From: Rebecca billardiae RCC1528
Lineage: Eukaryota > Protista > Haptophyta
Direction of reading: 5' to 3'
Assembly (NCBI GenBank): GCA_965240325.2
Contig: OZ251224.1
Span: 2,480,001-2,544,000 of the forward strand
Length of the DNA stretch: 64,000 nucleotides
Every line of letters begins with the position of its first letter. The first letter of the stretch is position 1. Below, piece after piece: positions 1-42,374 of this stretch. The position numbers and the translations under genes are program-made. Under the pieces are notes generated by a model. The model made no database searches, had not been told where the DNA came from, and was given only the letters and a program-made list of their open reading frames with translations.

Positions 1-47
1 CGTACTAGTTATGGTATCAGAAGTCTGTCAACCACCGAACAGCAGTC

Positions 48-1285
48 ACCTCCGCTGGCGGAGCTCGCTAATGAGCCATGCCTTTTGTAAACTAATACAC
101 TCGGCACTTGAACTGAGCTCCGCTGGCGGAGCTTCGGGGGCGCCGAATGCCATTCTTGATGACCCACCTGACTTGAACTGAGCTCCGCTGGCGGAGCGTC
201 GGTGGTCAGCGCCGTGTGTCATATCGGAGAAATAATGCTAAGCCTTTCAACGCATTCATACTCTGCTGTGCCACACATTCAACCTCCGCTGGCGGAGCTC
301 ACTGGCCTATTCGACTTGAACTGAGCTCCACTGGTGGAGCCTCGGCTGCGCCGAATGTCCTTAATCGATGACCCACTCTCGACTTGAGCTGAGCTCCCCT
401 GGCGGAGCTTTGGTGGCGCCGCATGTCATATTGGAGTAACGCGGAAGCGTCAACCGTAGTCATATCTATATTGAGACTCAACCTCCGCTGGCGGAGCTCG
501 CGGACCTACTAGTATTCAACTTTAACTGAGCTCCGCTGGCGGAGCCTCGGCTGTGTCGAATGTCCTTATCGATGGCCGACGTCTTGACTTGAGCTGAGCT
601 CCGCTGGCGGAGCTTTGGTGGCGCCGCATGCCATTTATGGGAATAATGTGAAGCCGTTAACCATAATCATATCCATATTGACACTCAACCTCCGCTGGCG
701 GAGCTCACGGACCTATTCGACTTGAGCTGAGCTCCACTGGCGGAGCTTTGGTGGCGCCGCATATCATATTGGAGTAATGCGAAGCCGTCAACCGTAATCA
801 TACGTATCCATATTGATACTCAACCTCCGCTGGCGGAGCTCACTGGCCTATTCGACTTGAACTGAGCTCCGCTGGCGGAGCCTCGGCTCCGCCGAATGTC
901 CTTATCGATGGCCCACGACTTGACTTGAGCTGAGCTCCGCTGGCGGAGCTTTGGTGGCGCCGCATGTCATATTGGAGTAATGCAAAGCCATTAACTACCG
1001 TAATCATATCCATATTGACACTCAACCTCCGCTGGCGGAGCTCGCGGGCCTATTCAACTTGAACTGAGCTCCGCTGGCGGAGCCTCGGCTGCGCCGAATG
1101 TCCTTATCGATGGCCCACGACTTGACTTGAGCTGAGCTCCGCTGGCGGAGCTTTGGTGGCGCCGAATGTCATATTGGAGTAATGCGAAGTCGTTAACCGT
1201 AATACTATCCATATTGACACTCAACCTCCGCTGGCGGAGCTCACGGGCCTATTCAACTTGAACTGAGCTCCGCTGGCGGAGCCTC
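48..1285 (+). repeat. Left-arm array of ~200-bp units, each carrying three copies of the hairpin motif (GAG)CTCCGC-TG-GCGGAG(CTC)
   Basis: About 19 motif copies. Unit starts recur near 284, 483, 690, 825, 1027 and 1226 (one short unit). The sequences between motifs are themselves repeated from unit to unit. Confidence 0.95.
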
Positions 1286-1879
1286 TGCTTGTGGTTTGCT
1301 GCAATTGGGGCTGGGCAGCCTGGGCTCAGCATGGGGCAGCTGTTCACAGCCCAGGCGGGGCGTCACCGCCTGTGAGCCGTCGGTGGGCAGGGCCGACGGC
1401 GTCGCAGAGCTCATGCGTGGGAGCAGCGCGTCGAGGAAGCGATCAAGGTCGAGAAGGAAGGGGCAAGCAGCAGGGGCTGCCTGTACGTTTGTACATGCCT
1501 CCACACCGGTGCACATCACCCTTGCTCACTGCAGTCGTGAACAGTGCTGCCACTCATCTCATCATCGCTCACCATGCAGTGACGGCCGAGCTGCGGCGAA
1601 CTCTCACAGGCACCGAACACGCATCGGCTGTGCCCGCTGGTGCTGGCATGCGCTGTCCTCTACTTGCTGTCGGACAGCAAGGAGACGGCACAGCCGCATC
1701 TGCGAGCGGGCGAGGTGATGCTGTCCAGTGTCCTCTGCTCAGCGAGGCTGAGAGGCTGAGCACGGATCACGGATAGTGAGCCCTGGTATCTCAACGCATC
1801 CAGGAGAGCAGTTGGTGCATGCCTGTGCTCAGACGTGCAGGACCAACCATCCGGTGCTGATTCAAGCACCCGCGCCAAC

Positions 1880-2900
1880 AGCGGCGGCACTCAACTCCAC
1901 GCTGCTGATGCGGCCGCACAGCTGCAGGGATGGTACCACGGCGGGCGACGGCGGGCGCTGCAGCTGGCAGCTCGGTGGTGCCTGCCCGAGGGGCCTGGGC
2001 GCCGGGCGCACCGAGCGCGATGACGCCTCTCGCATCGCCCAGCGCGCTGGAGCCGCTGTCATCCGATGCTGCTGTGCCCGCGCCCAGCTTGGGCTGCAGC
2101 AGCTGCGCTCGACTCCGCGCCGAGTGCGGCGGCAGCAGCGGGGATGGTGCCACCGCGGGCTGCGGCAGGCGCTGCGGCTGGCAGCTCGGTGGTGCGCGCC
2201 CGATGGGCCTGGGCGCTGGGCACAGCGAGCGCGGTGACGCTGCTCGCCTCGCCCAGCGCGCTGGAGCCGCTGCCATCGCGCGCTGCGCTGCCCGCGCCCA
2301 GCTTGGGCTGCCGCAGCTGCACTCAACTCCTCGCCGAGTGCGGCGGCAGCAGCAGGGATGGTACCACGCGGGCGGCGGCTATCACTTTGGCTGGCAGCTC
2401 GGTGGTGCCTGCCCGAGGGGCCTGGGCGGTGGACGCACCGAGCGCGATGACGTTGCTCGCCTCGCCCAGCGCGCTGGAGCCGCTGCCATCCGGCGCTGCG
2501 GTGTCCGCGGCTCCGCGCCCCGCCGGGGCAGCTAGCTGTCACAGCTGGCAGCTGCGCTCGACTCCGCGCCAGTGGGAGGGATGATGCCTCGGCGGGTGGT
2601 GGCGGTCGATGCAGCTGGCAGCTCGGTGGTGCGCGCCCGAGGGGCGTGACCGGCCTAGGCAGCAGCAGCTGCGCTCGACTCCGCGCCGATTGTGGCTGCA
2701 GCAGCAGGGAAGGCGCCACTGGCTGCGGCGGAGGTGGATGCAGCGATCAGCTCGGTTGTGTGCGCGCGAGGGGCCTGGGCGGCAGACGCGCCCAATGCGG
2801 TGACGCCGATGCACGCGTCCGATATGCTGGCCAGCAGCAGCCGTTGTGACACTTCTTCCGCCGGCTGACGGCAGCAGGCGGTACCATCGGTCACATTGGT
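1880..2900 (+). repeat. Degenerate GC-rich ~215-bp tandem repeat inside the foldback element (mirrored at ~3660-4590)
   Basis: CTGGCAGCTCGGTGGTG recurs near 1963, 2178, 2391 and 2615 with shared flanking sequence. Inverted copies occur in the right arm. Confidence 0.85.
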
Positions 2901-5184
2901 GAATTCGATCGGGGAGAACCCGGCAGGCCTCAGCCCCGGACACTGCTGCCTGCCAATGACCTGTGAGGGCCGCAGGCCTTCCGGGGCACGGGGGCCGCTG
3001 CGGTCAGCTCTTTGAGCTAGCCCGGCGCCGGGCGCGCGAACAAGTACGGCCCGGCGTCGGTGAGGCCGAGCAAGGCGCGCCGAAGTGCCGCGGCCCAGAT
3101 CTCAGCGCACGCATCATCAGTACTACGACATCACTGCGCCGCGGATATGCATCAGATAGCGCGACTGATGATGATGATGCGCCGCGCGCTCCCCGCTGAC
3201 CGGAGCCCGACTACGAGTAGCAGGCGCGCATGATCTGAGCTGAGTACGTAAGTAGCCCGTGTCATCCAGTGGCGGTGTCACACTTATGTGACTCAGGAGT
3301 CGGAGGAGTCGTTATCGTCATATCGTCATCATCATCATGAAGACGCGCAATAAAACGGTCATCAGGCGGACCTGCGCTACCATACGCCGTCAATGTAATG
3401 CTGAGGGCGAGGCCGGCAGCGTAGTCGTAACCTACGACTACTACGTACAGAAAAAAGTATAGCGCCATCATAAGAAGAGTAGCTGCGTGTGACTCGTCAC
3501 CGCGTTCTCAAAACTCCTGCGCTGCTGATCGGGACTCGGACGTACGCCGTCTTAAGCCTATATACCGGCGTGCGGTCGCAAGTCAATTCACGCGGCCCCT
3601 GCGACTCAGCGGCTCACTCACCTGGCTCATACGCAGCAACCGAGCAGTCACGGAGATCTGAGCAGCAGCTGTTAATTACCAGCCTGCTGCTGCTGCTGCC
3701 TGCGGCCGCACGCGGCGTGGAGTCGAGCGCACAGTCCGCAGCTGCCCGAACGGTTCAGCAGCATCAAATGGCAGCGGCTCGAGCGTGATAGGGGAAGCGA
3801 GGGGCGTCAGCTCGCTCGGCGCGTCCGTCGCCCAGGCCCCTTGGGCAGGCACCGTCGAGCTACCAGCTGCAGCGACTGCCGCCGCTCGCCGTGGTACAAT
3901 CCCTGCTGCTGCCGCCGCACGGGTGCGGAGTCGAGCGCACCTCGTGCTGCTCCGGCTGGGCGCGGACACCGCAGCGCCGGATGGCAAACGGCTCCAGCGC
4001 GCTGGGCGAGGCGAGCAACGTCACCGCGCTCGGTGCGTCCACCGCCCAGGCCCCTCGGGCAGGCACCACCGAGCTGCCAGCCAAAGTGATAGCCGCCGCC
4101 CGACGTGGCAACATCCCTGCTGCCACCGCACTCGGCGCGGAGTCGAGCGCAGCTGCGGCAGCCCACGCTCGACGCGGGCACAGCAGCGCCCGGTGGCAGC
4201 GGCTCCAGCGCGCTGGGCGAGGCGAGCAACGTCACCGCGCTCGCTGCACCCAGCGCCCAGGCCCCTCGGGCGCGCACCACCGAGCTGCCAGCTGCAGCGC
4301 CTGCCGCAGCCCGCGGTGGCACCATCCCCGCTGCTGCCGCCGCACTCGGCGCGGAGTCGAGCGCAGCTGCTGCAGCCCAAGCTGGGCGCGGGCACAGCAG
4401 CGTCGGATGACAGCGGCTCCAGCGCGCTGGGCGATGCGAGAGGCGTCATCGCGCTCGGTGCGCCCGGCGCCCAGGCCCCTCGGGCAGGCACCACCGAGCT
4501 GCCAGCTGCAGCGCCCGCCGTCGCCCGCCGTGGTACCATCCCTGCAGCTGTGCGGCCGCATCAGCAGCGTGGAGTTGAGTGCCGCCGCTGTTGGCGCGGG
4601 TGCTTGAATCAGCACCGGATGGTTGGTCCTGCACGTCTGAGCACAGGCATGCACCAACTGCTCTCCTGGATGCGTTGAGATACCAGGGCTCACTATCCGT
4701 GATCCGTGCTCAGCCTCTCAGCCTCGCTGAGCAGAGGACACTGGACAGCATCACCTCGCCCGCTCGCAGATGCGGCTGTGCCGTCTCCTTGCTGTCCGAC
4801 AGCAAGTAGAGGACAGCGCATGCCAGCACCAGCGGGCACAGCCGATGCGTGTTCGGTGCCTGTGAGAGTTCGCCGCAGCTCGGCCGTCACTGCATGGTGA
4901 GCGATGATGAGATGAGTGGCAGCACTGTTCACGACTGCAGTGAGCAAGGGTGATGTGCACCGGTGTGGAGGCATGTACAAACGTACAGGCAGCCCCTGCT
5001 GCTTGCCCCTTCCTTCTCGACCTTGATCGCTTCCTCGACGCGCTGCTCCCACGCATGAGCTCTGCGACGCCGTCGGCCCTGCCCACCGACGGCTCACAGG
5101 CGGTGACGCCCCGCCTGGGCTGTGAACAGCTGCCCCATGCTGAGCCCAGGCTGCCCAGCCCCAATTGCAGCAAACCACAAGCAG

Positions 5185-7012
5185 AGGCTCCGCCAGCGGA
5201 GCTCAGTTCAAGTTGAATACGTCCGTGAGCTCCGCCAGCGGAGGTTGAGTGTCAATATGGATAGTATTACGGTTAACGACTTCGCATTACTCCAATATGA
5301 CATTCGGCGCCACCAAAGCTCCGCCAGCGGAGCTCAGCTCAAGTCAAGTCGTGGGCCAGATGTCGATAAGGACATTCGGCGCAGCCGAGGCTCCGCCAGC
5401 GGAGCTCAGTTCAAGTTGAATAGGCCCGCGAGCTCCGCCAGCGGAGGTTGAGTGTCAATATGGATATGATTACGGTAGTTAACGGCGTTGCATTACTCCA
5501 ATATGACATGCGGCGCCACCAAAGCTCCGCCAGCGGAGCTCAGCTCAAGTCAAGTGGGCCATCGATAAGGACATTCGGCGCAGCCGAGGCTCCGCCAGCG
5601 GAGCTCAGTTCAAGTTGAATAGGCCCGCGAGCTCCGCCAGTGGAGGTTGAGTGTCAATATGGATATGATTACGGTAGTTAACGGCGTTGCATTACTCCAA
5701 TATGACATGCGGCGCCACCAAAGCTCCGCCAGCGGAGCTCAGCTCAAGTCAAGTGGGCCATCGATAAGGACATTCGGCGGAGCCGAGGCTCCGCCAGCGG
5801 AGCTCAGTTCAAGTTGAATAGGCCCGCGAGCTCCGCCAGCGGAGGTTGAGTGTCAATATGGATATGATTACGGTAGTTAGCGGCTTTGCATTACTACAAT
5901 ATGACATGCGGCGCCACCAAAGCTCCGCCAGCGGAGCTCAGCTCAAGTCAAGACGTGGGCCATCGATAAGGACATTCGGCGGAGCCGAGGCTCCGCCAGC
6001 GGAGCTCAGTTCAAGTCGAATAGGTCCGTGAGCTCCGCCAGCGGAGGTTGAGTATCAATATGGATATATGATTACGGTTGACGGCTTCGCATTACTCCAA
6101 TATGATATGCGGCGCCACCAAAGCTCCGCCAGCGGAGCTCAGCTCAAGTCGAATAGGTCCGTGAGCTCCGCCAGCGGAGGTTGAGTGTCAATATGGATAT
6201 GATTATGGTTAACGGCTTCACATTATTCCCATAAATGGCATGCGGCGCCACCAAAGCTCCGCCAGCGGAGCTCAGCTCAAGTCAAGACGTCGGCCATCGA
6301 TAAGGACATTCGACACAGCCGAGGCTCCGCCAGCGGAGCTCAGTTAAAGTTGAATACTAGTAGGTCCGCTAGCTCCGCCAGCGGAGGTTGAGTCTCAATA
6401 TAGATATGACTACGGTTGACGCTTCCGCGTTACTCCAATATGGCATGCGGCGCCACCAAAGCTCCGCCAGGGGAGCTCAGCTCAAGTCGAGAGTGGGTCA
6501 TCGATTAAGGACATTAGGACATTCGGCGCAGCCGAGGCTCCACCAGTGGAGCTCAGTTCAAGTCGAATAGGCCAGTGAGCTCCGCCAGCGGAGGTTGAAT
6601 GTGTGGCACGACAGCAGAGTATGAATGCGTTGAAAGGCTTAGCATTATTTCTCCAATATGACACACGGCGCTGACCACCGACGCTCCGCCAGCGGAGCTC
6701 AGTTCAAGTCAGGTGGGTCATCAAGAATGGCATTCGGCGCCCCCGAAGCTCCGCCAGCGGAGCTCAGTTCAAGTGCCGAGTGTATTAGTTTACAAAGGCA
6801 TGGCTCATTAGCGAGCTCCACCAGCGGAGGTGACTGCTGTTCGGTGGTTGACAGACTTCTGGTATAACTAGTTTGTTGTGTCAATCCTGCAAGTGCAAGC
6901 GGCCAGGCTCCGCCAGCGGAGCATTCCATGCTCCGCCAGCGGGGATTTTTCGTGGCCACAAAAATCTCCGCCGGCGGAGGGTCTGGGTCTTGCCCGATGC
7001 TCCGCTGGCGGG
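5185..7012 (-). repeat. Right-arm array of the same ~200-bp hairpin-motif units, with two more units than the left arm
   Basis: CTCCGCCAGCGGAGGTTGA-type unit starts near 5230, 5433, 5632, 5831, 6033, 6166, 6373 and 6580. Further motif copies continue up to the CACTA terminus. Confidence 0.95.
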
Positions 7013-7073
7013 GATTTTTTGTAGTGACTGCCCTGCCTCAGGGCAGATTAGCACCACTGCACTGAGCACCAGC

Positions 7074-8060
7074 ATGGCGGCCGAAGCCCCGGCGGCCACG
7101 TCGCTGCTGATCTCGGCCGAGGCCCTCGAGCGCCTCAGCCCGCAGGAGTACTACGGCCGCTACCTCGAGAGCGGCCTGCGCCCCGACGGCCGCTCCCTCG
7201 GAGAAGCGCGCCAGGCGACGCTCGCCACCTCGGTCGTGCGCACGGCGATCGGCTCGGCGAGCGTGCGGCTCGGACGCACCTGCGTGATCGCCGGCGTCAC
7301 GTGCGAGGCGCTGGTGGTGGCGGGCAAGGGCAGCGACGACTCGGGCGAAGTGCACGTGCACTTTGAGGCGCCTGGGCTCTCTGGCATGCGGCTGCGCGCG
7401 CCCACAGCCGCGGATGGCGTCGAGGGCTGGCTGCAGCAAATCCTGGCGCGTGCGCGCGTGCTCGCGCCACACGCGCTCCGGATCACGCCGGAGGCGGCGG
7501 CGTGGGCGCTGCACGTGGACGTGTACTGCCTCGAGCACGACGGCAACATCCTGGACGCGGCGCTGCTCGCCGCCCTCGCCGCGCTCAAGGATACCCGCCT
7601 CCCGCCGGCACGGTACGACGAGAGCAACGCGCGTGTGCTGGTGGGCGCGGCCGCGACCGACGGCCAGCCGGTCGATCCAATGGCGGGCGCGCGCCTCGAG
7701 CTGATCGCGTGCCCGCTCCCGCTCACCCTCGTCCGCGCGCTTCGCTGCACGCTCGCCGACCCGAGCGCCGACGAAGAAGCCTTTGCCGAGGCGCGCATCA
7801 CCGTCGTCGTGGACAGCGTCACCTCGGAGGTGGCCGTGCACAAGCCTGGCGGCGCGCCGCTCACAGATGACGAGCTGCGCGCATGCATCAACGCATCGCG
7901 GGCGCGCGCGGATGTGCTCGCCAAGCTGATGCAGGACGCGCTCCGCGCGGCTGCGACGGCGGCTCCTGAGGGCGACGCAGTGGCCGTGCCCGCCTCATCG
8001 GCGGCGAAGAATAAGCGCCGTCGGGATTCAGGCAATGCAGGTGGCCCCACGCCCACGTGA
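7074..8060 (+). CDS. RRP43: RNA exosome complex RNase PH-like subunit Rrp43/EXOSC8
   Basis: EALERLSPQEYYGRYLESGLRPDGR, GSASVRLGRTCVIAGV, LEHDGNILDAALLAALAALKDTRLP, ADPSADEE and HKPGG match the Rrp43 pattern. First ATG at 7074; the ORF-track extension to 6873 lies in the transposon end. Confidence 0.88.
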   Translation: MAAEAPAATSLLISAEALERLSPQEYYGRYLESGLRPDGRSLGEARQATLATSVVRTAIGSASVRLGRTCVIAGVTCEALVVAGKGSDDSGEVHVHFEAPGLSGMRLRAPTAADGVEGWLQQILARARVLAPHALRITPEAAAWALHVDVYCLEHDGNILDAALLAALAALKDTRLPPARYDESNARVLVGAAATDGQPVDPMAGARLELIACPLPLTLVRALRCTLADPSADEEAFAEARITVVVDSVTSEVAVHKPGGAPLTDDELRACINASRARADVLAKLMQDALRAAATAAPEGDAVAVPASSAAKNKRRRDSGNAGGPTPT

Positions 8061-8562
8061 CGACCCGGCCCTGACATTCACGGAGCCACATTGAGACTCT
8101 GGGTCTGACGCAGCCAAGCTCAGAGTGTGCCACTTGGGGAGTCCCATGATTGCGGCCAGACGGCTCGTCACTGCATCCATACAGTGGCGCGCATCAGTAG
8201 TGAGTGTCACCGTCCGGGCGGACGAACTCACGAACTTCTGCCTGCTCAGTCCGGTCAACAACCGATCCGACAGCCGCCGTGCCTACTGCCCCGCGGTTCG
8301 GTCATCAAGTACTAATAGCAGTATTTGTGACGAGCGCCTTGAAGTACATCAGCGTCGCAGACGTCGAGTTTGGCGTGTCGCTCGACTTCTTTCGGAGCCC
8401 GCACTCCACAGCCTCCGGAAGAAGGCGCCAGAACGCGGCAGAGTGCGCGAATTCGTGGGCTACTTGCACTTTACGCACAAATTCGGGCCACGGGGCGCAC
8501 GATGGCGGCTGCCTGACACCGCCGCGTCGTCGCATCGAATTCGATGGCTCGGGCTTCGGTTG

Positions 8563-8595
<33 letters not shown>

Positions 8596-9116
8596 CAGAG
8601 ACGGGCCGCGAGCATCACCGTATATATATATATAGTGAGCTTGCTATAGTGCTACTGGCGTGATTCAATCTGAGCGTACGCAGTGACGACCAGCTTCAAA
8701 GTGAGTGAGTGACTGAGGCACGCGGGATCGGGGACGGGAGTGACGCCTCATGAATGACGCCGGATGACGCGGGAGCCGCCAGCACTGCGTGCCTATGTCC
8801 GAATTATATATATGCGATATGCGCTACATATACGACTACTAGCGGTACTTGACTCTTGAGTCATACTCATAATCATTCTCTTGAGCCTTGAGGCCGCAGA
8901 TCAGCTGATCAGCAGATGACGATGGCCAAGATTTCACTAATCAGGTGCCGCCTATAGCTGCTAGCATGCGTAGCAGATGATGACTCATCAGTGGCATTGA
9001 CTGTCTGATACAGTAAGCTACGGCAGGCACCCTCTTGACCGCATACAGTAGGCCATAGCCAGGCAGCAGGCTCCCGAACAGCGAGGTAGGCAGGATGCTC
9101 ATCCGCGCCACTGGTC

Positions 9117-26484: not shown

Positions 26485-29186
26485 TCAGCCGAGAGAGGTG
26501 GCATTGCCACCTCTCGCGCGAGTTGGGGAAACGTTGAGTTCCCGAGTTTTTATACGGGGCGGCAATTTCTGGCGCGCGCAATCTTCCGATTTTAAGGCGG
26601 TGGGTGGCGCCGCCGCCGTCGCGCTCTCGACGCGCGCGAGCTGCGCGCGCGCGGCGGCGGTTTTGGCCGCGCGGCACTGGGCCGGCTGGGTCCGCACGGC
26701 CGAGGAGGCCACTCTTGCCGCGGTGGTCGTGGCGCGGGGACGTCCCCGCCGCTCGCCAACCTCCCGCGAGCGCCTCGCGCCGCCTCGCGCCGCCTTCACG
26801 CCATCTCCGCGTGCCAACTGCACGCTCTGGACGCCTCGGCGGCAGAGACGCGCGCGGCGCGGTTGTGTGCCGTGTAGACTGGGCCCATGCGCGTCCGCTG
26901 TCGGTGCGCCCCGGCCACGCGCGCGCGCAGCCCAGACCTCTCGCCTCACGCGTCGCCGCTGAGCACGGCTGTGCACCTCAGTCTGCCGTGGTGCCGCGCG
27001 CGCGGCCGAGCGAGCAGGCGGCGCGTTGTGGAGCGTGTGACGCACGAGACGGGGAGGCGTCCGAGCGTCCGAGCCACCGCCGACCGGCGGCGCGCACTCG
27101 ATTGGCTTGAGCCATCGGCGCCGACGGCGCGCGCGCGCTGAGCCAGCTGAAGGCTTGTGCGCCATGGCACGGCAGCCGCCAATCGCGGCCTGCGGCCGTA
27201 CTGTGCGGCAGGCGCGCTCGGTGCGGGCGCTTCGGGGCGTGGCCTCACGAGACCGGAGCCCCTGGAAGCGCGACGCCTATGAGCTCGCCCCGGCCTGAGT
27301 GAGCGCGCATCTGTCAGTGATCGGCACACGCAGCAGCACGGGGTGGCCGTCGTCATGAGCCATGGCCTTGACACGGCCGCGCTGAGCGCGCCACGACACA
27401 CCGCACGGCGCCGCGTGAAGAGTAGATGTATGACCCCCGGCACTTACCTTGGCCCGTGTGCTCTTGCGCGCACGCATGCGAGCACTCGCATGCTGCCGCG
27501 CACCTGCCTGACGCGTTTCATCTGAGCGTCTGTCCGATGCCAGCCACGTGCTTCCATTGACAGAGAGAGTGACTATACCAGTCAGTAGTCGTAACCCTCC
27601 AGTTGAACCGCACAGTTCCATGGTTGCAGTGCTGCTGGTCCGCTGACTCCGAGGCGGGCGCGCCACGGCAGCTCTCTCTCTCACGGCGCACGGTCCTTGT
27701 GCGCCGGGAGCAGCCGCGTCTGCGCAGACCCACTGCTTACCAGGAAGTTTGAGACTGTATCTCCTTCCATCCCATCTGCTGCAACGTCTACCACGGCTGG
27801 TAGCCTGCTGACCCAGACGACCAGCGAGCAAGTATGTCTCCTCGGTGAGCGCGAGCGAGCGCTGCTACTGACACTCGATTCGTGCGCACACGCGCCCGCC
27901 CGACGCACTCTCACGTTGGCCCGAGGTGGCGTATGCGCGCGCCCGCGTGCGATGATGCCAACTGCTGCTCAGGTCATCCGACATGGGCTGAATAGTGGGT
28001 CGTGCTACCTGGCCGCGCGGCGCTCGAAGCTCGCGTTTCTGGCTGGCACGAGCGTTTCAAGGTGTCAGCGTAGGTGAAGGGTGGGATACTGGGATCCCAG
28101 CCTTCTGCCGGTACGGAGACAGCGCACACGCACGCGTGGCGCCTGCGCCGCCGGCCATCGCACACAGCCCTGCTTAATGGTCTCGCATGCGCCAGCATGA
28201 CCGTGCACGCCTAGCGCCGCACCATGCAGGTGAGAACTTCAAAAGTGCGCATGCTCGCTTGTTCTTCGTGCCTGGTCGACACCCAACGTGGGAGCGCTCA
28301 GCACGGAGCTCATGACGACGGCCACCCCGTGCTGCTGCGTGTGCCGATCACTGACAGATGCGCGCTCACTCAGGCCGGGGCGAGCTCATAGGCGTCGCGC
28401 TTCCAGGGGCTCCGGTCTCGTGAGGCCACGCCCCGAAGCGCCCGCACCGAGCGCGCCTGCCGCACAGTACGGCCGCAGGCCGCGATTGGCGGCTGCCGTG
28501 CCATGGCGCACAAGCCTTCAGCTGGCTCAGCGCGCGCGCGCCGTCGGCGCCGATGGCTCAAGCCAATCGAGTGCGCGCCGCCGGTCGGCGGTGGCTCGGA
28601 CGCTCGGACGCCTCCCCGTCTCGTGCGTCACACGCTCCACAACGCGCCGCCTGCTCGCTCGGCCGCGCGCGCGGCACCACGGCAGACTGAGGTGCACAGC
28701 CGTGCTCAGCGGCGACGCGTGAGGCGAGAGGTCTGGGCTGCGCGCGCGCGTGGCCGGGGCGCACCGACAGCGGACGCGCATGGCCCCAGTCTACACGGCA
28801 CACAACCGCGCCGCGCGCGTCTCTGCCGCCGAGGCGTCCAGAGCGTGCAGTTGGCGCGCGGAGATGGCGTGAAGGCGGCGCGAGGCGGCGCGAGGCGCTC
28901 GCGGGAGGTTGGCGAGCGGCGGGGACGTCCCCGCGCCACGACCACCGCGGCAAGAGTGGCCTCCTCGGCCGTGCGGACCCAGCCGGCCCAGTGCCGCGCG
29001 GCCAAAACCGCCGCCGCGCGCGCGCAGCTCGCGCGCGTCGAGAGCGCGACGGCGGCGGCGCCACCCACCGCCTTAAAATCGGCGGAAGATTGCGCGCGCC
29101 AGAAATTGCCGCCCCGTGTAAAAACTCGGGAACTCAACGTTTCCCCAACTCGCGCGAGAGGTGGCAATGCCACCTCTCTCGGCTGA
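26485..29186. mobile_element. Non-autonomous foldback element with ~876-bp terminal inverted repeats and 4-bp TSD (GCTT)
   Basis: 26485-27360 is the near-perfect reverse complement of 28308-29186. Termini are TCAGCCGAGAGAGG...CCTCTCTCGGCTGA, with GCTT at 26481-26484 and 29187-29190. Confidence 0.9.
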
Positions 29187-40354: not shown

Positions 40355-42374
40355 TAGCCTGTCCGGCCCCCCTCCGCTGGCTACGGGGGGCCTGCCGAAA
40401 GTCTGCTCTAGCGGGACCCCCGCGCACTGGGGCTGCACTGGGCGCGAGCTCGGCGGGGACGTGGCGAGCGGGTCGGTGCGCGCCGCGGGCTGGGTGCGCG
40501 ATTTTACCAACGTATCGGTCGATCTGACCCTTCCCGTCGCGCCGCTCTTGCCCTCGCGGCCTCTCTTCCCCCCAACACGGGTGCGCGCAGCCGCTCGAAC
40601 AGCCTGGCTGCAGGTCTTTCACAGACGGCGGGCCGCGTGCAACCTGCGCGGGTGAAGAGGGGTGGCTTGTTGCGTGGTTGCGTGGCTGACGCTCATATGT
40701 GGCCTTGCGAGCCTTTGTGTGCGAGGTTACTTGCCCACATCCGCTCTCGCGTGTCATGCGCGCGTGTAACGTACACCATCGGATCTCCGCTGCGCTTGCG
40801 CTTGTCCATCTGCTGCCAGCTGGGCCAGCGTGGGGCCACTGCAGGCACTAAGACGGTGACGCCATATCGTTGACATGTTATGTCGCATGCTTGTGGCCTT
40901 CGTCTTTGCCATCTGCGTGCTTGATATTGAAGGCAGTGCTTCTGGCAGGTGCATTCCTGAAGTTGCCCGTCGAGTCACCCTCGGCTCCCGCGTCACTGTG
41001 TTACACAGACTCACAGCTCCGGTGCGAGAGGGGAATCATCAAGCATCGTCGCCCGCATGCTTGTGGCGTACAAGCACGCTCCGAGCGGGCAGGCTGCCGT
41101 CCCGTTCTCCGACGCAACGCGCCACAAGGTCATGTCGTTAGCGTGGCCGGGTTTAAAATTAAATCCACTGCGATGAATAAAATATTAATAAAAGAAACGA
41201 ATATTGAGCAACCCCGCCCGCCGGCCAGGCCGACTACCTCCCCCACGGCTAGGGTGAGCGCCATCCCCGACCGCACCGGCGGCTGGCGAGAGCATCCACG
41301 CAGACTACTCTCACTAGCTTACTGCATCAACTCGGACCGTCACTCGTCAGCCGGGACCGACGGCGGCAACGGCGTGACGACCGACGACTGCAAGTCACAG
41401 CGGCATCTCAGTGATCAGCATCGGCGACGACTCCCTCATCCGCGGCTAACGCGCTCACATCCTCCGCCTCCAATCAGTACTTCGACAGACGAATCAGGAG
41501 AGCTGCGTCCTCATGCCTGGTGTGTCTTTAAATCCTAGAATTGTCAGAGTACAGTAGCGCTGTAGTGCAGCAGCGGCAGCAGGAGAGTGCGCACACCGCG
41601 CCGGCGACGTGGACAAGCCGACGCTTGATCTAGTACGTTGCTGACTTCATCTGCCATCCGATGATCAGCCGTGCGGTGCCCCATCACCCAAGCTATCCTG
41701 GGCACTGGCCTCTCAGCCTGGCGCGATGCCCGTCGTCACAGGTTGACACGAATGACGAGTCAGATGCCCATGTCGTTTTGGCTGCTGGACTCCGCTTCAC
41801 AGTGCACACCTCCAGTGGACGGGAGGAACGTAACGCAGCGCGCGCACTTGCACTCGCCTGGATGCGAGCCCGTCAGAATGTCGACGATCTCGCGCGCGAC
41901 GTGGATAGCCAGTGGCAGTGGCCTCGGCTGCTGCAAGGCGGGTCGCATACGGCATAGTGTTCGTTGCACGCGCGCATGACACGCGAGAGCAGATGTGGGC
42001 TAGTAACCTCGCACACAAAGGCTCGCAAGGCCACACACGGGCGTCAGCCGCGTAACCACGCAACAAGCCACCCCTCTTCACCCGCGCAGGTTGCACGCGG
42101 CCTGCCGTCTGTGAACGACCTGCAGCCAGGCTGTTCAAGCGTCTGCGCGCACCCGTGTTGGGGGGAAGAGAGGCCGCGAGGGCAAGAGCGGCGCGACGGG
42201 GAGGGTCAGGTCGACCGATACGTTGGTAAAATCGCGCACCCAGCCCACGGCGCGCGCCGACCCGCTCGCCACGTCCCCGCCGAGCTCGCGCCCGGAACGA
42301 CCCCAGTGCGCGGGGGTCCCGCTAGAGCAGACTTTCGGCAGCCTCTACACAGCAGTGTAGAGTCGGACAGCCTA
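40355..42374. mobile_element. Non-autonomous Mutator-like element with ~420-bp TIRs and probable 9-bp TSD (CCGGCAAGG)
   Basis: 40392-40779 is an inverted copy of 41954-42341. Outer ends are TAGCCTGTCCG / CGGACAGCCTA, with CCGGCAAGG at 40346-40354 and 42375-42383. A 5- or 7-bp TSD is also possible if the TIR includes flanking G/C. Confidence 0.8.

Follow-up and report, generated by a model that had tools for sequence, protein, structure and literature searches.

The window, a stretch of 64,000 nt (G000:C5:2480001-2544000), opens inside a large foldback element. The element spans G000:C5:2479842-2487035, which is window -158 to 7035, and is 7,194 bp long. It lies upstream of a host gene with an RNase PH domain, whose ATG is 38 bp from the right element end. 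The coordinates of all features are collected in Table 1.

Table 1. Features of the foldback element and its right neighbour, in window coordinates.
Feature	Position	Strand	Basis
Window portion of the foldback element	1..7035	.	block bounded by CAG/CTG, conserved in 16 copies
Left array, ~202-bp units with three palindromic sites each (18 sites in the window part)	1..1290	+	
Left-arm non-repeated segment, mirror at 4546-5179	1291..1878	.	arm alignment
Left-arm GC-rich 214-bp tandem array, 2.9 units	1879..2509	.	
Central loop, unmirrored	2830..3760	.	without Pfam or Rfam match
Right-arm GC-rich 214-bp tandem array, 3.7 units	3768..4545	.	
Right-arm non-repeated segment, mirror of 1291-1878	4546..5179	.	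arm alignment
Right array, ~200-bp units with palindromic sites, orientation opposite to left array	5180..6830	-	
Right terminal ~200 bp, 89% like the left terminal region, four more sites	6830..7035	-	
CACTACAAAAAA, terminus supposed in the preliminary description; internal to the inverted repeat	7015..7026	-	
True outermost 9 nt ACTGCCCTG, common to all copies; left counterpart CAGAAGAGT (CTGAAGAGT in the window copy)	7027..7035	+	
CAGGGCAG, last 8 nt of the right terminus, inverted, 3 nt outside the element	7039..7046	+	
Host gene start, RNase PH domain, exosome-subunit-like	7074..7520	+	PF01138, 36.8 bits

Over positions 1 to 7035, the window forms a large imperfect palindrome. The longest gap-free pair of arm segments is 1111-2352 with 4117-5358 (1,242 nt, 98%), and other gap-free pairs are 351-802 with 6067-6518 (452 nt, 99%) and 805-1118 with 5753-6066 (314 nt, 98%). 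When gaps are allowed, ~2.7 kb is paired at 96-97%. Thus, the inverted kilobase arms of the preliminary description, claimed as 2.5-2.9 kb, are real, being ~2.7 kb long and 96-99% complementary.

The layout from an end inward starts with a recognisable terminal inverted repeat of ~50 nt inside a terminal region of ~200 bp. It continues with a 1.1-1.7 kb array of ~202-bp units, a unique segment, a GC-rich array of 214-bp units, and a loop of ~0.9 kb. In a genome search, the first 778 nt of the loop match only the 16 copies of this foldback family described below. The 153-nt stretch next to the 214-bp array (window 3608-3760) is matched at 78-81% by ~10 loci outside the family.

The arrays are built around a palindromic site. 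The 14-mer CTCCGCTGGCGGAG (CTCCGC-TG-GCGGAG) occurs 47 times in the window with one mismatch at most, and all the occurrences are between 50 and 7013, while 0.19 is expected by chance from shuffles. Start-to-start distances of 42, 68, and 92 nt place three sites in each tandem unit of ~202 bp, in good agreement with the ~45 self-complementary motifs, three per 200 bp, that had been described before. The site extends to an 18-bp consensus, AGCTCCGC-TG-GCGGAGCT, and three flank classes are found per unit. Its central TG has a single orientation relative to the nearer element end, and the outermost site begins 23 nt from each end. Of 719 exact sites genome-wide, 697 are inside the fetched copies.

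When a young subfamily is compared with a subfamily that has diverged to 88-90%, site positions are 96-99% identical, whereas the rest of the arrays is 84-85% identical (Fisher p for site versus spacer conservation, 1e-8 to 1e-13). The site is therefore under constraint, as it is conserved above the spacers between the subfamilies. On the other hand, a single site folds as single-stranded DNA at -4 to -7 kcal/mol, which is not better than shuffled sequence, and a two-base loop is unable to close the full stem. When the whole unit is folded, neighbouring sites pair with one another instead. Small hairpins nested in the arms, proposed previously, are thus poorly borne out, and the sites are read as protein-binding rather than as functional small hairpins. 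They probably constitute a putative protein-binding array, judging from sequence conservation and folding. A search of metagenomes for relatives via paired sites gave nothing but REP-like palindromes, most of them bacterial and none of them related.

Other copies were collected by searching the 72-Mb assembly with the right end, which gave paired ends at many loci, and 19 of these were fetched. Such genome searches score the best candidates only, and absences are soft. In the 72-Mb genome, the family comprises no fewer than 16 full copies plus 3 fragments. The 16 full copies are 6,987-9,396 bp long and located on 11 contigs. The fragments are two truncated halves beside host genes and one short diverged fragment.

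All 16 copies are colinear, apart from differing array lengths, a single nested insertion, and a single inversion. The nested insertion is a 2.4-kb element with TIRs inside the C27 copy. The inversion concerns the central 2.1 kb, which L045 and L046 (the C5:1.58 Mb and C6 copies) carry in reverse relative to L044 (the C21 copy) and every other copy. It breaks within the mirrored 214-bp arrays, as expected if the two arms had recombined.

Among seven copies with lengths of 6,987-6,989 bp, any two differ by 2-10 substitutions (0.03-0.14%), and the 23 variable columns are all singletons, each private to one copy. This star pattern points to one recent master and a very recent burst. The burst of seven near-identical copies implies that an active transposase must have been there until very recently. 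Compared with these young copies, the window copy shows ~1-3% divergence and another array length, and is therefore older. Excision footprints keeping at least 8 nt of both ends were searched for, and none was detected in the genome.

The ends of the element were determined by comparing the copies. In all 16 full copies, the left end is CAGAAGAGT-CACTAC... and the right end is ...GTAGTG-ACTGCCCTG, or in longer form CAGAAGAGT-CACTACAAAAAG... and ...TTTTTTGTAGTG-ACTGCCCTG. Because the nine further bases beyond CACTA are conserved on both sides in 16/16 full copies, the inverted repeat extends to CAG...CTG. Directly outside CAG/CTG, flanks vary from copy to copy. The element thus ends at 7035 rather than at 7026, where a terminus had been placed before. 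A left terminus had been predicted ~150 bp before position 1, and CACTAC is indeed present 149 bp before it (L031:552). The supposed 3-bp TSD ACT (7027-7029) did not hold, as the left side has AGT, and the AGT and ACT beside CACTA are complements inside the inverted repeat, not a direct repeat.

Perfect target duplications of 7 bp were found in seven copies (L033, L034, L035, L038, L042, L043, and L046), the repeats being ccctcgc, gttcagc, tgatgta, gcgcgcg, cgaatgc, agccacc, and gtcggaa. Near-perfect duplications are seen in L036, with a 6/7 match, and in L037, with a match upon a 1-nt shift at the junction. The eighth base is mismatched in every clean copy. Four older copies, including the window copy, have no matching duplications. 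The unit that moves runs from CAG to CTG, and its insertion duplicates 7 bp of target.

DNA transposons of the CACTA/EnSpm (CMC) group end exactly in 5'-CACTA...TAGTG-3' with a TSD of 2-4 bp (typically 3 bp), and their autonomous members encode a TnpD-type DDE transposase and share these ends. The TSD is 8 bp for hAT and ~9 bp (8-11 bp) for Mutator and Drosophila FB elements. P superfamily or Galileo-like elements have a TSD of 7-8 bp, and their autonomous members encode a P-type transposase of the THAP/RNase-H-fold kind. In the preliminary description, the element was taken for a CACTA/foldback hybrid mobilised in trans. Such a hybrid would end at CACTACAAAAAA, have a 3-bp TSD, and use TnpD/TnpA-type proteins that bind the subterminal motif. 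It is suggested by the CACTAC motif near both ends and by subterminal arrays in which a short motif occurs in either orientation, recalling the TnpA-binding repeats of En/Spm. However, CACTA is 9 bp internal in this family, the inverted repeat continues through the nine conserved bases outside it in every full copy, AGT/ACT are complements, duplications are 7 bp rather than 3 bp or anything within 2-4 bp, and no copy has a CACTA-type transposase or a TnpD/TnpA gene. With the 7-bp TSD and CACTA being internal, the CACTA/EnSpm assignment is therefore excluded, and the hybrid as a whole is very improbable. What stands of the earlier reading is the non-autonomous foldback structure, the long modular arms, and mobilisation in trans, but its CACTA half gives way to the 7-bp duplications and the CAG...CTG ends. 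Among other superfamilies, the mismatched eighth base in each clean copy argues against hAT identity, and the TSD of 7 bp rather than ~9 bp argues against Mutator/FB-type identity.

Because assemblers are known to produce large perfect palindromes in error, and because the L032 copy abuts a run of N, a palindrome created as a chimera by the assembler was considered. Against this, 16 loci on 11 contigs show this architecture, with flanks that differ and with 7-bp duplications, and the arms are imperfect (96-97%) alike in all copies, leaving an artefact hardly any probability. If segmental duplication or recombination, not transposition, had dispersed the palindromic repeat, the four copies lacking target duplications and the two flanks sharing a 270-bp repeat would fit. 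Yet similarity ends at the identical base at both ends in all copies, each of the seven perfect 7-bp duplications has a chance of ~6e-5, and the near-identical star-pattern copies are on different contigs. Spreading without transposition is thus extremely improbable too. We consider it likely that the element belongs to a family of non-autonomous foldback DNA transposons that have a 7-bp TSD and CAG...CTG ends and are moved in trans.

In the window copy itself, the left end is CTGAAGAGT in place of CAGAAGAGT, the left CAG being mutated to CTG, and the flanks, cggtgcc and cctcagg, do not match. The left flank contains a 15-bp palindrome, AGGGCAC-N-GTGCCCT, three times. As the final one abuts the element, TGCCCTG stands before AAGAGT... 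on the left as it does after ...GTGAC on the right. The left CAG is mutated in three copies (the window, C24, and C5:0.79 Mb copies), none of which has a matching duplication, and in the C5:0.79 Mb copy, the two flanks form an inverted repeat. Such a state could be due to ectopic recombination of the kind described for chimeric Galileo copies, or to an aberrant microhomology-mediated event. The window copy is an old member with a mutated left end and is probably immobile.

Proximity to a gene start may not be peculiar to this copy. When all copies were taken together, an outward, ATG-started open frame was less than 200 bp away in 16 of 30 flanks, compared with 7 of 30 reversed controls. This is a weak hint of insertion beside gene starts.

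A transposase was sought in several ways. Pfam searches on ORFs of the window copy and the C27 copy gave no transposase and no match to any protein family, which bears out the earlier observation of an element without transposase, and an Rfam search of the element gave no match either. Sequences beside the C10, C12, and C17 fragments, examined by ORFs and Pfam, contain no transposase, only host genes (GNAT, pseudouridine synthase, and short-chain dehydrogenase). Autonomous relatives were searched for with the terminal 271 bp, the 14-nt terminus, a degenerate 12-nt terminus, and the central loop, all of which match only this foldback family. Hence, within search sensitivity, no autonomous element with the same ends is in the assembly. 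Copies encoding TnpD/TnpA, for which a genome-wide search with the terminus had been suggested, did not turn up, as no copy encodes a transposase.

A single match in the genome was obtained with the PF21787 profile (P/THAP9 RNase-H N-terminal domain). It is an intact P/THAP9-like ORF of 1,317 aa (G000:C21:1532845-1536796) with a score of 31.9 bits, the cut-off being 24.6. In the PDB, the ORF matches only the P transposase of Drosophila, and the alignment covers the SDxPHLIKxxRN and D..EHxFG motifs. The ORF is single-copy in the genome, and neither TIRs nor a 7-bp duplication is detectable within ~5 kb of it, nor are the motifs and ends of the foldback family found there. The PF21789 profile has no match in the genome and likewise none in any control genome, making that blank uninformative. 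The link of this P-like gene to the foldback family is circumstantial.

The known system closest in build is Galileo of Drosophila. This member of the P superfamily has foldback-like TIRs, 7-bp TSDs, and many two-TIR copies without transposase; its TIRs contain ~210-bp tandem repeats of variable copy number with THAP-domain binding sites within, and some copies are chimeric with non-matching flanks (PMC3573991, PMC3688188). The present element shares long, repeat-filled arms with units of ~200-210 bp that vary between copies and arms. It also shares the 7-bp duplications, the CA start, the frequent lack of transposase, and some copies with non-matching flanks. Galileo carries repeated protein-binding sites in its arm repeats, and the palindromic sites would be their equivalent here. 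On the other hand, the arms are ~2.7 kb here versus 1.2 kb at most in Galileo, ~45 copies of one palindromic 14-18-bp site stand against few THAP sites, and the second, GC-rich 214-bp array is unlike Galileo. Galileo has insect hosts, whereas the host here is an alga-like eukaryote rich in GC. Whereas Galileo is in the P superfamily, this element is known from copies without transposase, so its superfamily membership is unproven.

Other foldback systems resemble it as well. Drosophila FB, Tetris, and Tm1 are, like this element, hairpin-shaped and mostly non-coding with tandem-repeat arms (PMC4079207, PMC3169594), and Tetris links its arms to satellite arrays (PMC4079207). FB and Tm1 are generally known to make ~9-bp duplications and are tied to Mutator-like enzymes (for Tm1, PMC3169594), compared with 7 bp here. 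Incidentally, P-2_cRei of the green alga Chlamydomonas is active, so P-type transposons are active outside animals (PMC9977147).

Two features of Galileo-like and P elements are found in the family, namely the 7-8 bp TSD length (seven perfect and two near-perfect duplications of 7 bp) and the long inverted arms whose internal tandem repeats vary in number. By analogy, a P/THAP9-type enzyme is suggested by the length of the target duplication (7 bp), by ends that start with CA, and by a build like that of Galileo. We make this assignment tentatively and rate it a little short of an even chance. Alternatively, the same element may be moved by a non-P transposase, either hAT-like, Mutator-like, or an undescribed enzyme, and its likeness to Galileo would then be convergent. 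The P-like gene on C21 shows no link to the family, the CAG ends are compatible with the hAT pattern, and several superfamilies have given rise to long TIRs with internal repeats (PMC3688188; for the Tm1 Mutator/Foldback elements, PMC3169594). Set against these points is the length of exactly 7 bp in every clean copy, since hAT and Mutator/FB enzymes are generally known to leave 8 bp and ~9 bp. A non-P enzyme is a real possibility, somewhat less probable than one of P type. Whichever enzyme moves it, the element is foldback/Galileo-like and recently active, with an architecture either convergent on or homologous to that of Drosophila Galileo.

We propose that the transposon, itself gene-less, is mobilised in trans and depends on a transposase gene located elsewhere in the genome. 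The ~45 sites, judged by their conservation, may bind that transposase or a dimeric partner, which would provide high avidity and help the pairing of the two ends. Unequal recombination would alter the array length, and recombination between the arms could flip the centre. More speculatively, the seven-copy burst without an autonomous partner might have been driven by the single-copy, TIR-less, domesticated-looking yet active P/THAP9-like gene, which would find its substrates via the dense arrays of palindromic sites and not via shared termini. We regard this last scenario as unlikely.

The analysis corrects a tempting misclassification, since CACTA is not terminal here and 7 bp of target are duplicated. 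It also records a large, non-coding foldback family of very young age outside animals. With ~45 conserved sites per element, the family is a clean substrate for studying the role of repeat-filled arms, whether in avidity, end pairing, or structure. The burst at 0.03-0.14% divergence without an autonomous partner makes the source of the transposase a concrete question. Finally, such elements adjoin gene starts and can drive inversions, which makes them relevant to genome annotation and stability.

The second foldback element of the window has 879-nt arms that are 99.3% identical, and its termini are T-CAGCCGAGAG...CTCTCGGCTG-A. Because its two flanks are alike in GCTT only, this element may have generated a 4-bp target duplication and may belong to a family other than that of the 7-kb foldback transposon. 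The third has 388-nt arms (94% identity) and termini CTGCCGAAAG...CTTTCGGCAG, with no clear target duplication in its flanks.

Locations of elements, matching loci and the transposase ORF (G000:Cn, contig n of the assembly)
Feature	Location	Strand	Size
Second foldback element	window 26485-29186		2.7 kb
Third foldback element	window 40392-42341		1.95 kb
Loci matching window 3608-3760	G000:C19:195892, C36:67243, C32:891923, C19:385963, C22:359649, C16:1186378, C34:109171, C17:649092, C16:645200, C15:1902367		
Nested TIR element	L040 (G000:C27:645300-655200), element coordinates 6275-8680		2,406 bp
P/THAP9-like transposase ORF, intact, single-copy	G000:C21:1532845-1536796 (L051:5843-9796)	minus	1,317 aa

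Outside the 7-kb family, a 153-nt stretch of the window copy (window 3608-3760), which adjoins the 214-bp array of the right arm, has about ten matches at 78-81%. These loci are probably other families of foldback elements, whose ends differ.

Between the two genes flanking the window copy, the promoter region contains the palindrome AGGGCAC-N-GTGCCCT three times (window -219..-160; 483-541 of L031, the stretch holding this copy), half of which is similar to the right terminus of the 7-kb element. Eight nucleotides of that terminus reappear, inverted, 3 nt outside the right end (window 7039-7046). These terminus-like sequences may be there by chance, or may represent a footprint or a preferred target. 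The left flank (L031:196-466) also has a 270-bp sequence in common, at 82% identity, with a flank of the copy at C19:1.42 Mb (L033:1-267). Lying about 80 bp away from either insertion, it is either a repeat or a common target context.

The nested TIR element is inserted in an array unit of the C27 foldback copy, with TIRs of 36-38 bp beginning AGACCCCTTCAGGG and AT as a 2-bp target duplication. The left-type end of the L032 copy (G000:C1:2413900-2421500) directly abuts a 200-N assembly gap, so its target duplication is unreadable. Among diverged-subfamily copies, L045 and L046 differ from the otherwise similar L044 in that the central 2.1 kb is in opposite orientation (G000:C5:1580715-1589700, C6:971-9953, C21:533844-542352), which is consistent with arm-to-arm recombination flipping the centre.

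The P/THAP9-like ORF, around which no TIRs are recognisable, may supply a transposase; alternatively, it may be a domesticated gene.
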